From Octopus bimaculoides (Eukaryota), in assembly GCF_001194135.2 (NCBI RefSeq), contig NC_068992.1:8343982-8380105 (forward strand): 36,124 nucleotides of DNA. The letters are read 5' to 3'. Below are positions 9,560 to 17,912 of this stretch, piece by piece. The notes beneath the pieces are model-generated. The model was not told where the DNA came from. It ran no database searches and was given only the letters and a program-made list of their open reading frames with translations. The translations under genes were made by a program, and so were the position numbers. Within the stretch, counting starts at the first letter, position 1; each line of letters starts with the position of its first letter.

Positions 9560-9845
9560 TGTGTTGTGTTGTGTGTTGGCACTCCGTCGCTTACGACGTC
9601 GAGGGTTCCAGTTGATTCGATCAACGGAACAGCCTGCTCGTGAAATCAACGTGCAAGTGGCTGAACACTCCACAGACACGTGTACCCTTAACGTAGTTCT
9701 CGGGGATATTCAGCGTGACACAGTGTGACAAGGCTGACCCTTTGAAATACAGACACAACAGAAATAGGAAGTAAGAGTGAGAGAAAGTTGTGGTGAAAGA
9801 GTACAGCAGGGTTAGCCACCATCCCCTGCCGGAGCCTCGTGGAGC
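9560..9845 (-). mobile_element. Family A SINE, 5'-truncated (no tRNA head)
   Basis: Reverse complement of 17640-17909 with about 19 mismatches in about 270 bp by manual count. Confidence 0.9.
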
Positions 9846-10047
9846 CTTTTTCAAAATACATTCAGACGACGGGGAACATTTTTATTTCCTGTTGTTTTGC
9901 TTGCTTTTTGCAGTTTCACTAAGATTTATTGTTGTTCTTTGCTTTTTTGTGGGAGGGCTATATTATTTTTGTTATTTTCTTTTGAGCAACCACTCTTCAG
10001 TTTAACAAACAAATCTTACAAAGTTTTTTATTATTCTGTTTTCAGCC

Positions 10048-10791
10048 ATGAATGAAGTAATAATGGAATTCCGACAGAACTATACCTACGGGTATATAGT
10101 GGAATACATCCCAGAAAACCACACCAGATGTTCGAGTTGGATTCTTGTGCCAGGAGAAAACCTTTGGCTTCATACAACACGAGGTGTGATTTATATAATA
10201 GCCATACTGTACATATTTTTAGGAATTGCTATTGTCTCCGATTTATTCATGAGTAGTATTGAGGTAATTACCAGCCAGAAGAGAACAGTCTACAAGTGGG
10301 ATGAAGAGCGGCAGGAGAGAATTGCAAAAGAAGTAATGGTGTGGAACGAAACTGTTGCCAATCTTACACTTCTAGCTCTTGGAAGCAGTGCTCCAGAGAT
10401 ATTATTGGCCACAATAGAGAATGTTTTAAGGCTTGGGGAACAAGGCGGGGAGAAAAACCTTGGTACTTTTACCATTGTAGGTAGCGCTGCTTTCAATTTG
10501 TTAATGATAACCTCCGTTTGTATATCCAGTTTACCAAATGACAAAGTTAAAAAAATCAAAACGTTTGGAGTATTTATTACAACGTCTGTCTGGTCTCTAT
10601 GGGCTTATATATGGATGTATATCGTAACAGCTTTCATCTCTCCCGGAGTTGTAACTATTTGGGAAGCCTGGGTAACTTTCCTATACTTCCCTGCCTTCGT
10701 ACTCCACGCCTACGCACAAGATAACGGCTGGTGGATATGTAAACGAAAGAAACAATCACCAACAGTCATTACTGAGGATCCTCCATCAGTT
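10048..10791 (+). CDS. NCX: Na+/Ca2+ exchanger (SLC8/NCX family) coding exon: N-terminus, TM1-TM5, alpha-1 repeat (248 codons; exon 10046-10791)
   Basis: Translation contains FMSSIEVITSQ, VWNETVANLTLLALGSSAPEILL, TIVGSAAFNL and SPGVVTIWEA, which are hallmark NCX motifs. Acceptor ttattctgttttcag ends at 10045; donor GT|gtaagt starts at 10792 (phase 0). The paralog cannot be assigned. Confidence 0.97.
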
Positions 10792-11187
10792 GTAAGTATT
10801 GTCATTTTTACTCACTGCCGTTTCTTTTCGATTTAATCCGTTCAAATTTGAACGCATTTAAATGTCCTCATTATGTATATATATATATATGCCCTAACTC
10901 TTCGAAACGCTTAGTTTTAGAATGGTGACAGCTGATGAAGGAAATGTTCTCTATGTGGCCTGTGTGTTTTCTGTACTCTGTTTATCATTTTGTCCACGTT
11001 TTGTTTTTGCAACGTCCTGTACCCAGATATGCATCTATATATACAGGTAGATGTAGGTATGTACATACATGTACGTATATATGCATATACTCATTATTTG
11101 TATATATATACATATTGTATGGAGCTCTTTAATTAACCAGCAGCCAAATCGTATCGCTTAAATGAGGAAAAGACACATGAGAATGTA

Positions 11188-11447
11188 TTAGGTTGGTTCA
11201 CATTAAATGTCGCATTTTTAATTACTTGTTATTTCAGTCATTTAAAAACTCAATTATAAATACCTTGCATTTAATCTTGACTCTTTTCTTTCCCAACAAT
11301 ATCGGCATACAAAATTCGTACCCACAGACCTTATGAAAATGTTAACAACCAAACTATGTTGAGTGATTTTCTTGTATGAGTACAAACTGGGTCACTCTGC
11401 CGCAGAAGCTCTACGGAATATCAAGCGGGCCTTTAGTAATGGTTTTG

Positions 11448-14008: not shown

Positions 14009-14020
14009 AATAATAATAAT

Positions 14021-14187
14021 CTTTTATACTTTTGGCACAAGGCCCGAAATTTTTGAGGAAGAGGCCAGTCGATTAGATCGACCCCAGTACGCAACTGTTA
14101 CTTAATTTATCGACCCCCAAAAGGCAAAGTTGACCTCGACGGAATTTGAGCTCAGAATGTAAAGATGGCCGAAATACCACTAAGCAT
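14021..14187 (-). mobile_element. Family B SINE (array copy 3, 5'-truncated)
   Basis: ggcacaaggcccgaaat...aaggcaaagttgacctcgacggaatttgagctcag...ccgaaataccactaagcat. Confidence 0.85.
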
Positions 14188-17100
14188 GAGCTTGATTTGT
14201 GTGCGTGAGCGGTTTTCATAATTTTAAAGTCTGATTTTAGATATTTTCTCGGCAAACGTAACCAGCATTTGGGAAGCCTTTTGGGAAGCATTTGTCATAT
14301 TGTCTTTGGGAATACTTTGTCATGCTGTCTTCAAACATAGGGACATATCGGATAAATATTCCTGAGATACATTGCCCGAAAAAAAAAAAACTGACGGAAT
14401 ATTCATGGATGATGCGCCTTTAATTATAGATATGCATACGAGACTGACTCCCTAAGAAATCGCGTACTGGTAACACAGAAAGTTGTTCATGTATACGCGT
14501 AGTGACCAAGAACTTTCTATACATACGAGACCACAATAGGGGATGGTGTACGTACGCGATCATTTATAAACTAGGATGTTGTGTAGGAACTCCTGACAAT
14601 TTGAAAACTTCATTACTCAAAATATCATTAAAGGTTATTTCATTCATAATATTAAACTAGAATTTGATCTTGGCATAAACAATGAATATCTCGCAATCAA
14701 TTGATCATAAGAAGTATCGATTTAATTCTAAAGAAAGTAATTAGCTAATTAACACAGATGCGAAGTATATGCAATCTGTTATTATCTCCACGTCAAATTG
14801 TAGCACATGTAGCACATGTAGTCAAACAATATAACCTATTGTCACCTTTGATAAAAGGGTGTGGAGGTGCGAGATTTTGTGTGTTTTTATAGGAAATTAA
14901 ATTAGCAACAAAAGTCGGGGAAATCGCTATAACCAGAAACTAAAAGCGAGTCACATTTTCGTTTCACCAAAGTAATAAATATAACCTTTACTCTTTAACG
15001 TGAGCTAACTGTATAACTGTTTTGACGAGTGTGAAATCCTTATGTTTTAACGGAGATTGGGAAGGGACATTATGAAATACATGTCTTTCCTATGAGTATT
15101 AACAACTTGAGTGCTGTGAACTTTCTTTGTATTGGTCAAATATACTCTTTGCATTTCTGCTTTCTTTTTTTGTTGTTCATTTTTCTCTTTTTCTCTTGTT
15201 CTCATTTGTTCTCTCTTTTTCTCCTTATTTACCCTACAACTCGACTTGAAGGGTGCTTATATAACATCTGGATTTGACCCAACGTTTAGCCACATGGAAA
15301 TCATGAGTTGATCATGTGTCCAAGTATATTTTCCTTCCATCTAATCAACAGTTTTCGTTCACGTGATAGTCTGACAGTATTACTAGGATTTTCTGTGAAC
15401 AGAGCTTAGAAATACCGCTCATTTTAGCGCGAAAAGACCAAAGTGAATTCGGTCCCTGGTGGAGTTCGCTCTCGACCTATAGCTGTTATCACAGCTACAT
15501 ATTCAACCCGACGCGATAGATGATGAAACATACCGAGGCAACATGGTAACAAGCATGAGCATTGACGTGTAAATAGCGGCCTAATGTGAATTTCTGATGG
15601 AGATCTCCTGCACCTGTATTATACGTCGTTTCGTATAAAATTTCCTCTTCTTATATTGCATGAACATCTGCATTAATGTAGCAATAAATGATGTATATAT
15701 ATATCTACAACATGCCTTTCTTCATAACCAAATTACGTAATTGTAACAACAGATACCGAGTCGTTACTCAAGTGTACACTACCCATTGTGTATTCTTTTG
15801 TTTTTAAAGAGAGTTTGGTATGTTATTTGAGGAGGAAGTTTGTTGATATCTCTAATAGGTCGCGTTACTCCGTGGACTCTCATTCTCTGGTTCAAATTTT
15901 ATGTTAATGTCATTAGAATTTCTATTGAAAACATGGTAACACCCCGAGGAGTGAACAGAAGATTGTGTTTCTCACACGCTTACAACCATTTCTCATCAGT
16001 TATGCTGCTGAACAAATGATTTTGAGAAAGGCATAAACGCTACTCTGTCTGATTTTCCCCTTAAAATAAGTAAGCCCTGTATTATACACAGGTCAGAATA
16101 TTATTCAGAGAATTCGCCTTTTAATCAGGAAATATTCCCCGAACATTTCATTGAGTATTTATCCGTCTCATAGAACATTTACGTATCTAACCGAAATTTT
16201 ACGTAATAACTCCTAAGAGGTTTATACACCTATTTTATTTATTTTACCCATTTGATATTCTTTCTTGATTTGATATCCTTTCACTGGATTGTTGCAAGCT
16301 TTCTACCTAGAGAGTTCATGAGAACTGTCTATACTGGAATATATTTTCGACAGATCAGTAAACACAATTATTTGTGCTATGAAACAATTGATGTAAAAAT
16401 AAACAACAATGATTCCGTATATTTTTGTCTATTGTTCATTCAGCACACGGCTAGATTAATCATTGTCTAAAGTATTGATGCTGCAGCTAGATCCAGGTCT
16501 TTATTTCTTGGCATTTTTTGTGTCTATTTATTGAAAGTACTATGTGCTGGATACTTCAGTACAGATTTTTGTGGCTGTCACCTGTCTCTTGTTGGCAGCA
16601 TTTTTGTGTTGAAGACAACGAGCACTTATTCTTGTTTTATCAGCATTAAGAGATTCTGAAAGACCCTCACCTGTCATCGTTTTCTTTGAATAGGAAACGA
16701 TGACCGGGTTTATATTTATTCATTAGAAGAAACGAGAATTTGGCACAGCAGACAAATTGAATACGCTCGCGCACACACAAACAAATAAGATCAAACTGGC
16801 TTCAAAGAGACTGGTGTTGGTTTGTGTCGACAAGACTTGTATCATTTACTAAAATCAACAAGAAGAGAAAAAAGTGTACGGCTGCGTGGAATAGAAAATC
16901 CAATATTACAGATAGGGTTCTTCAGAGAAATGTTGTCAGGAGAGAAATTGAAGAGACAACCACGAAAAACCTTTAATCTAATATCAATAAAATACAAGTA
17001 CCAGTGAAATAGTGAGGCTCGATTGAAAGTAGAAGCATACTCTCTTCTCTTGTATGTATCTTGTGCTAAAGCTAGAAATCAATTTACGTAAAACTTCACC

Positions 17101-17528
17101 ATTCGATCAACAGTGATTTTTTTTTATACAAGCAGACATGGCCATGTGATTAAGAAGTTAGTTCCCCGGTCTTGTGACAACTTGATCATGTCCAAGCCCT
17201 CTGAGTAGAATTGAAGTGACGAAAACTATGCTGAAATCAATCAGATGAGATTGTATAAATTTCTCACGCGGCAAGCGAAATTCGTCTCAAAGTTAAACAT
17301 CTTCATCTAGCCACTGGCCACATTTAGAAAAGTCCCCTTTGTTGCAGGCATTTTGATTGCGTCAAAAGAGAATAACTTATTGATATTATTGATGTTTTGC
17401 TTTTCTGATGTGGAAAACCATGAGTTAGGGTTTCTCCCATCAATCTCTGGTCCCAGCAAAAAGTAACGGACCCAATTTCTTTCACCTGTAACTAACTTGC
17501 ACTTTATATCTTTTTTAATGAAGGTCAA

Positions 17529-17912
17529 GTGGAGGCGCAATGGCCCAGTGGTTAGGGCAGCCGACTCGCGGTCATAGGGTCGCGGTTTCGATTCCCAGAT
17601 CGGGCGTTGTGAGTGTTTATTGAGCGAAAACACCTAAAGCTCCACAAGGCTCCGGCAGGGGATGGTGGTGAACCCTGCTGTACTCTGTCACCACAACTTT
17701 CTCTCACTCTTACTTCCTGTTTCTGTTGTACCTGTAATTCAAAGGATCAGCCTTCTCACACTGTGTCACGCTGAATATCCTCGAGAACTACGTTAAGGGT
17801 ACACGTGTCTGTGGGGTGCTCAGCCACTTGCACGTTAATTTCACGAGCAGTCTGTTCCGTTGATCGGATCGACTGGAACCCTCGACGTCGTAAGCGACGA
17901 AGTGCCAACATC
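17529..17912 (+). mobile_element. Family A tRNA-derived SINE, full length (about 380 bp)
   Basis: A-box TGGCCCAGTGG, B-box-like GTTTCGATTCC, body shared with the copies at 1-221 and 9560-9845, and a 3' stem-loop cgtcg-taag-cgacg. Confidence 0.92.

Follow-up and report, generated by a model that had tools for sequence, protein, structure and literature searches.

In an octopus sodium/calcium exchanger gene, the exon with the start codon is bracketed by inverted SINEs and is a plausible but ordinary candidate for back-splicing

The locus raised the question of whether the first coding exon of an octopus NCX gene is back-spliced into a circular RNA. A preliminary description of the window, a stretch of 36,124 nucleotides from Octopus bimaculoides, had proposed such a circle as a convergent cephalopod version of a mammalian one, promoted by inverted SINE pairs around the exon and possibly modulated by ADAR editing.

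The exon was located on the plus strand at positions 10046-10791. It begins CCATGAATG at 10046, carries the ATG at 10048 and is 746 nt long, a length that leaves a remainder of 2 when divided by three. An acceptor AG at 10044-10045 and a donor GTAAGT from 10792 were read from the sequence. The exon translation was 100% identical over 248 aa to the Octopus bimaculoides protein XP_052828046.1, which is annotated as 'sodium/calcium exchanger 2 isoform X6' and has XP_052828045.1 in its cluster (LOC106880178). This protein starts at the ATG at 10048, so the exon holds the annotated start codon. The Pfam domain Na_Ca_ex (PF01699) was found at residues 49-222 of the translation with an E-value of 6.7e-20 and full coverage of the model; the exon encodes the N-terminal copy of this domain, and the GSSAPE alpha-1 motif is present. 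The exon is assigned to an NCX / SLC8 exchanger gene of the CaCA superfamily.

The donor opens an intron of 15,706 nt (10792-26497, plus strand), which contains the SINE copy A3, arrays of family B and two assembly gaps. The next exon, at 26498, was placed by tblastn with isoforms X5 and X6, both of which are annotated as linear products encoding TM1-5 and a partial loop. This second coding exon (26498-26607, plus strand, GMRVVHH...VVIT) has a CAG acceptor and a GTGAGT donor, and the third (31100-31183, plus strand, TEIEPTSG...FARAR) has a TAG acceptor and a GTATGT donor. Only two short cytoplasmic-loop exons of LOC106880178 lie within the window. On the other side of the start-codon exon, the segment 9849-10045 (plus strand) was taken as the 3' end of a putative 5'UTR intron; it ends in a polypyrimidine tract of 20 nt, a CTTAC resembling a branch point some 26 nt ahead of the acceptor AG, and a CAG that sits 2 nt before the ATG.

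Family A was represented in the 36 kb by three copies and one fragment. Like tRNA-derived SINEs, whose copies measure 300-400 nt, it is dispersed, with a 5' truncation in copy A2 and a lineage-specific insertion of that copy, and is putatively a SINE with a tRNA-like head. Copy A1 (1-222, minus strand) is antisense to the gene, includes the tRNA-like head and is cut by the start of the window; it was 95% identical over 222 nt to the reverse of 17528-17749, and its cofolding with A3 yielded -436 kcal/mol. The head of A1 is abutted by a sense fragment of 48 nt from the SINE 3' end (227-274, plus strand), which is 98% complementary to 9569-9616 and would compete only weakly for pairing on the upstream side. 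Copy A2 (9574-9848, minus strand), also antisense, is 5'-truncated, lacks the tRNA-like head and has a GT-rich tail repeat at 9557-9573. Copy A3 (17528-17910, plus strand) is full length and sense. Its A-box-like motif TGGCCCAGTGG at 17541-17551 fits the box consensus, and its B-box-like motif GGTTTCGATTCC at 17584-17595 does so save for one extra T. No tRNA was found in the A3 head by ARAGORN or Rfam, and no Rfam match was obtained at the gathering threshold for the whole window or at the E-value threshold for families A and B.

The arms 9574-9848 of A2 and 17636-17910 of A3 were 93% complementary over 275 nt. Their cofolding energy was -513.8 kcal/mol, compared with -170 kcal/mol with a shuffled partner, and this strongest duplex of the window spans the exon. 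Upstream, 197 nt separate the A2 arm from the exon; downstream, 6,844 nt separate the exon from the A3 arm, a total of 7,041 nt. The inverted family A pair of the preliminary description (about 93% over about 270 bp, ending 200 nt before the acceptor) was thus recovered with coordinates within a few bases. Pairing of A3 across the exon would be little contested, since the assembled sequence of its own intron contains no antisense family A partner; moreover, A3 is transcribed about 9 kb ahead of the competing linear acceptor at 26498.

A second and closer inverted pair, attributed to family C, had also been described. The homology is real but weak. The upstream member is an older family C copy (9236-9515, plus strand), which is common to the related octopus locus and matches 30196-30335 (71%) and, inverted, 30353-30453 (82%). 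The downstream member is a diverged family C-like fragment (11511-11650, minus strand) after a (CA)41 microsatellite at 11450-11532. Approximately 9267-9407 and 11511-11650 gave a gapped alignment of 142 nt at 65% identity, and the pair cofolded at -110 kcal/mol versus -66 kcal/mol for a shuffled partner. It was missed by the ungapped repeat finder, which, applied to 2 kb on each side, returned no inverted repeat of 24 nt or more spanning the exon.

Bracketing of the exon by inverted SINEs was not found to exceed chance. The 36 kb holds 18 inverted pairs. When 746-nt segments were placed at random in the window, 83% fell between the arms of some inverted pair at least 100 nt long, and 47% did so for pairs that reached 200 nt and 90% identity. 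The preliminary description had already cautioned that SINE density could make such an arrangement accidental. With SINE bracketing so usual in DNA this rich in repeats, the exon looks ordinary as a candidate. The one unusual feature was how near the upstream arm lies to the exon, which was matched by 1.3% of placements, a criterion picked post hoc after the data had been seen. Besides, a cut-off of 2,300 nt for the total distance between the pair and the splice sites was used for human repeat-dependent circles (PMC6487579), and the 7,041 nt of the A2-A3 pair lies well beyond it.

Joining 10791 to 10046 would place CCTCCATCAGTT directly before CCATGAATGAAG, which is read V-P-stop. The predicted ORF of the circle has 249 aa, ends ...EDPPSVP and closes with a TGA overlapping the ATG, exactly as previously described; it takes up the entire circle and leaves zero untranslated region. 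The overlap of stop and start follows from the exon length modulo 3 being 2 together with the fixed coding sequence ATG-AAT. Its interpretation as a selected design was rejected, the junction being identical in the orthologous locus of a related octopus (L001), which is without the SINE pair.

Positions 1-511 of L001 were aligned to 9076-9549 of the window at 72.5% identity, and the upstream SINE A2 was missing from the orthologous site. The 746-nt exon, its splice sites and the V-P-stop junction were all retained there, hence these features are upheld without the SINE pair, and the conservation of exon and splice sites is attributed to coding constraint. The polypyrimidine tract and the CAG before the exon were likewise conserved, with pyrimidine-for-pyrimidine changes.

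The precedents for such a circle were compared with the octopus exon. Mammalian circSLC8A1 consists of exon 2 (1,832 nt) and contains an ORF of 605 aa (PMC11724312). It belongs to the same gene family, is likewise formed from a single exon with the start codon and the TM1-5 block, and has an ORF that crosses the back-splice junction and then stops almost immediately. However, the mammalian exon has 2.5 times the length of the octopus one and additionally codes for the greater part of the cytoplasmic loop, and its circle has been shown experimentally and is abundant, whereas the octopus circle is predicted from sequence alone. The mammalian circle had been put forward as established: its existence and abundance stand, but its coding for a truncated protein is contested, as no protein was detected from circSLC8A1 itself (PMC6487579).

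AUG circRNAs (Stagsted et al. 2019), circSLC8A1 among them, are reported to be largely independent of inverted repeats, to depend on long introns and to be untranslated; their putative ORFs and stop codons are not conserved, and a flanking-intron cut-off of 6.5 kb (6,500 nt) was applied to them (PMC6487579). The octopus exon resembles this class in its annotated start codon, N-terminal ORF and 15.7-kb downstream intron, which exceeds 6.5 kb. Nevertheless, the class was defined from observed circles, while the octopus circle is a sequence-based candidate, for which the preliminary description relied on a SINE pair. The Drosophila Calx circRNA, an invertebrate NCX-family circle, also includes the start codon (PMC6156539), but fly circles mostly lack flanking inverted repeats (PMC6487579), unlike the octopus exon with its SINE pair. 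The fly circle also makes the label 'convergent' uncertain for a cephalopod one.

In its opposed SINEs in both flanking introns and a long duplex that could draw donor and acceptor together, the octopus arrangement is similar to that of primate inverted-Alu (IRAlu) circles, although its pair is set far wider than the human cut-off and its SINE family is cephalopod-specific. Duplex-driven circularisation of the primate kind is antagonised by ADAR, as cited in the octopus circRNA survey. That survey of 18 tissues of O. vulgaris yielded only 296 high-confidence circRNAs at low levels, which its authors attributed to ADAR antagonism; no list naming an exchanger was found in its supplement.

Based on all of the above, the sequence prerequisites for back-splicing are all present (canonical splice-site signals, a 746-nt start-codon exon, a long intron and a stable duplex), and an octopus NCX circle is a candidate that appears plausible but ordinary. 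We proposed that the annotated first coding exon of LOC106880178 lies between a probable 5'UTR intron and the 15.7-kb intron, both SINE-rich. A young, 5'-truncated antisense A2 would have inserted 197 nt upstream of the acceptor, with the full-length sense A3 lying 6.8 kb past the donor. If both were present in one pre-mRNA, they could form an intronic duplex of 275 bp, 93% matched, which would be just one of the numerous SINE duplexes in the introns and probably a substrate of ADAR. Linear splicing of the exon is the likeliest outcome, while back-splicing probably does not occur or yields only a minor by-product. A circle, should one form, would be of the usual non-coding start-codon ('AUG') kind, for whose formation the long flanking intron would matter as much as the SINE pair. 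This account was judged somewhat more likely than not.

It was also observed that some features count against the favoured account. NCX start-codon circles occur in two distant lineages, as mammalian circSLC8A1 and Drosophila Calx. The combination of 746 nt, a start codon and a 15.7-kb downstream intron is the classic single-exon-circle profile. Competition for cross-exon pairing is small, and A3 is transcribed ahead of the acceptor at 26498.

The main competitor, which is possible but clearly less probable, is that the exon gives rise to a real, reproducible AUG circRNA, favoured by long introns on its flanks, by the A2-A3 (or A1-A3) duplex, or by both. ADAR editing of the duplex would tune its level, and it would act as a non-coding RNA or simply divert pre-mRNA from the linear message. 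It would agree with the canonical splice sites, the start-codon exon and its long downstream intron, with the strongest duplex of the window spanning that exon, with the gene-family precedents in mammals and flies, and with the statement that AUG circRNA features reach invertebrates (PMC6487579). The small and low octopus circRNA repertoire, the distal SINE pair found in one species only and the chance level of bracketing argue against it. Translation of such a circle into a five-TM half exchanger of 249 aa (...EDPPSVP), acting as a truncated or dominant-modulating NCX subunit and perhaps involving termination and reinitiation at the AUGA overlap, is highly improbable. Its ORF closes as described and fills the whole circle, TM1-5 and a partial loop are also encoded by the linear isoforms X5 and X6, and transport activity was reported for the SLC8A1 exon 2-encoded protein (Li and Lytton 1999, as cited in PMC11724312). 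However, the circSLC8A1 precedent gave no detected protein, and the ORFs and stops of AUG circles are not conserved (PMC6487579). In addition, the circle offers no untranslated region for an internal ribosome entry site, a T occupies position -3 of the start context, the product would be without the whole regulatory loop of the 605-aa mammalian one, and V-P-stop is forced by the coding sequence and conserved also in a species without the SINE pair.

A different reading, considered unlikely, would take the exon as the true first exon, with 10046 not an acceptor and transcription starting at 9849-10045 or just upstream. A start downstream of A2 would leave the upstream SINEs outside the pre-mRNA and make back-splicing impossible. 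No 5'UTR exon was recognised within the window, an older annotation has a single-exon gene of 262 aa, and among three other invertebrate NCX loci an acceptor just upstream of the ATG was clear in one (L004) and not in the others (L003 and L005). Against this stand the polypyrimidine tract, the CTTAC and the CAG before the ATG, together with their conservation in the related octopus, and the location of the mammalian SLC8A1 and fly Calx start codons in an internal, circularising exon.

At present, the locus shows prerequisites alone, and in this SINE-rich genome these surround most exons. A stronger proposal, which seems rather unlikely, is that octopus shares with mammals and flies a circularising NCX start-codon exon, with the recently inserted SINE pair as a booster in O. 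bimaculoides and ADAR editing of the 275-bp duplex as a tissue-specific brake. If it were true, circNCX would be among the very few circRNAs that are recurrent or conserved across bilaterian phyla. Circularisation of the start-codon exon in vertebrates, insects and molluscs alike would set NCX apart as a rare gene family and would suggest that this trait of the exon is old or was gained more than once. The two octopus species, which differ in the presence of the upstream SINE, would then offer a clean natural test of inverted repeats against long introns in an animal whose ADAR activity is very high.

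The exon was located as in the preliminary description, at 10046-10791 (746 nt) with the ATG at 10048, and the sequences given for it were correct. A putative acceptor AG at 10044-10045 was preceded by a 20-nt polypyrimidine tract, as read from the sequence, and a consensus donor GTAAGT began at 10792, directly after the exon. The exon translation contained a complete Pfam Na_Ca_ex domain (residues 49-222, E = 6.7e-20) and the GSSAPE alpha-1 motif. It matched Octopus bimaculoides XP_052828046.1 ('sodium/calcium exchanger 2 isoform X6') at 100% identity, and this protein shares a cluster with XP_052828045.1 (LOC106880178 isoform X5). 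By tblastn of isoforms X5 and X6, the next two coding exons, each bordered by canonical splice sites, were placed at 26498-26607 and 31100-31183; hence, the downstream intron was 15,706 nt long. The linear junction of exons 1 and 2 read CCTCCATCAGTT|GGCATGAGAGTG. A protein search with the exon translation returned hundreds of ~250-aa matches from invertebrates, indicating that an exon end shortly past TM5 is widespread. The annotated short isoforms X5 and X6 (363 and 399 aa) spanned 10048-31183, with their last exons outside the window, and comprised TM1-5 and a partial loop, diverging beyond ...FARAR. Half exchangers may already come from linear mRNAs, provided that the X5 and X6 models are real.

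Joining 10791 to 10046 gave CCTCCATCAGTT|CCATGAATGAAG, and the 24-mer spanning this back-splice junction was CCTCCATCAGTTCCATGAATGAAG. The computed open reading frame of the circle agreed with the one proposed, being 249 aa long, ending in ...EDPPSVP and having the TGA overlapping the ATG. Therefore, the whole circle would be coding, with no untranslated region. The start codon in the circle had T at position -3.

The main inverted pair, between 9574-9848 and 17636-17910, was recovered by a repeat finder and by self-BLAST over 275 nt at 93% complementarity. Both copies belonged to family A, a SINE of ~383 nt. The downstream copy was full-length (17528-17910, sense) and carried A-box-like (17541-17551) and B-box-like (17584-17595) sequences in its head, where no tRNA was called by ARAGORN or Rfam. 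The upstream copy (9574-9848, antisense) was 5'-truncated and lacked the head. Given the tblastn exon placement, the pair enclosed this single annotated coding exon only. The two arms cofolded at -513.8 kcal/mol versus -170 kcal/mol for a shuffled partner, by far the most stable duplex in the window; pairs of the repeat family B reached just -175 to -254 kcal/mol. No antisense family A partner for the downstream copy was present in the assembled sequence of its own intron, which has two assembly gaps. A third copy (1-222, antisense), cut by the window edge, was 95% complementary to 17528-17749. Its head directly adjoined a 48-nt sense piece of the same SINE's 3' end (227-274), and this arrangement over 1-274 suggests that an insertion was nested or rearranged.

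A second, closer inverted pair, formed by family C, had also been proposed. It did exist (about 9267-9407 versus 11511-11650), but was far weaker than implied: the alignment was gapped, covered 142 nt at 65% identity, brought a small duplex gain (-110 versus -66 kcal/mol with a shuffled partner) and was missed by an ungapped repeat finder. With the latter, the 2-kb flanks of the exon yielded no cross-exon inverted repeats of 24 nt or longer. Elsewhere, family C fragments at 30196-30335 (+) and 30353-30453 (-) lay 17 nt apart in opposite orientation, a local hairpin-like arrangement in the intron that separates exon 2 from exon 3; the second fragment was also 82% complementary to 9292-9392. Family B, a unit of ~170-230 nt without an Rfam match, occurred at 70-85% identity in either orientation, both singly and as arrays of two or three tandem units (13563-14187 and 21089-21557; also 1724-1941, 5134-5310, 22811-22955 and 24549-24757), supplying many inverted pairs across the exon and inside the intron. 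A (GA)n tract at 8625-8675 and a (CT)n tract at 9066-9116, ~390 nt apart, could pair within the upstream flank, this pairing being microsatellite-based and involving no transposon pair. Assembly gaps (N runs at 691-1136, 5555-5837, 8110-8536, 18802-18939, 22438-22808, 30603-30682, 32713-32722 and 35242-35251) were flanked by microsatellites and could conceal more repeat copies, including competitors for SINE pairing. Open reading frames listed across the N runs were rejected as artefacts.

The window held 18 inverted pairs at E < 1e-6, and SINEs are reported in a review to make up 4%, and all repeats ~45%, of the O. bimaculoides genome. When a 746-nt pseudo-exon was slid along the window, 83% of placements were bracketed by some inverted pair of at least 100 nt and 47% by one that was 200 nt or longer and 90% or more identical, as estimated from this single window. 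Bracketing as such was therefore uninformative. The sole unusual feature was the nearness of the upstream arm, matched in 1.3% of placements by a criterion picked post hoc.

The orthologous locus of a related octopus (Logan contig L001) encoded a 98% identical protein and was 89.5% identical in DNA over 9849-10890. The upstream SINE was missing from it, although both sides aligned: homology ended at 9549 and restarted exactly at 9849, and 2,094 nt of unrelated sequence (L001 512-2605) replaced 9550-9848. This stretch carried a called minus-strand 176-aa open reading frame with no Pfam match. Either a deletion accompanied the SINE insertion in O. bimaculoides, or the other species gained its sequence independently by insertion. 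An older family C copy was common to both. Since the upstream arm was absent from L001, the SINE pair was considered young and lineage-specific. L001 nevertheless kept the 746-nt exon, the donor, the V-P-stop junction (CCTCCATCAGTC|CCATGAATGAAG) and the same acceptor tract with pyrimidine-for-pyrimidine changes. Closure of the reading frame is thus a by-product of conserved coding sequence and owes nothing to selection tied to the SINE pair.

It is possible, but rather unlikely, that a circular NCX RNA from 10046-10791 would be detectable. The exon is long, bears the start codon, precedes a very long intron and is spanned by the strongest duplex of the window, and the downstream SINE would be transcribed ~9 kb ahead of the competing acceptor at 26498. 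However, the total arm distance is 7,041 nt, when the repeat dependence of human circles has an empirical limit of 2,300 nt in total to the nearest inverted pair (PMC6487579). According to the same paper, start-codon circles as a class rely on long introns and arise independently of repeats. Moreover, the presence of the upstream SINE in the pre-mRNA hinges on the use of 10046 as an acceptor, a putative function for which the evidence consists of conserved sequence signals. A study with total-RNA data from 18 tissues of O. vulgaris (PMC9699675) found only 296 high-confidence circular RNAs, at low levels, which its authors linked to ADAR melting intronic duplexes.

Translation of a circle into protein is very improbable. 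A transport-active protein from SLC8A1 exon 2 was reported in 1999, according to a citation in a recent review (PMC11724312). On the other hand, ectopic circSLC8A1 yielded no detectable protein, and putative circle reading frames and stop codons lack conservation (PMC6487579). The T at -3 and the want of untranslated sequence also count against it, and the regulatory loop would be missing entirely from the octopus product. Since the annotated linear isoforms X5 and X6 already encode TM1-5 and a partial loop, any truncated protein needs no circle.

The anatomy was thus confirmed: the annotated first coding exon of NCX lies inside an incidental, young SINE pair. A circular RNA from it is a reasonable, unremarkable candidate of a known kind, namely a start-codon circular RNA or a repeat-flanked exon.
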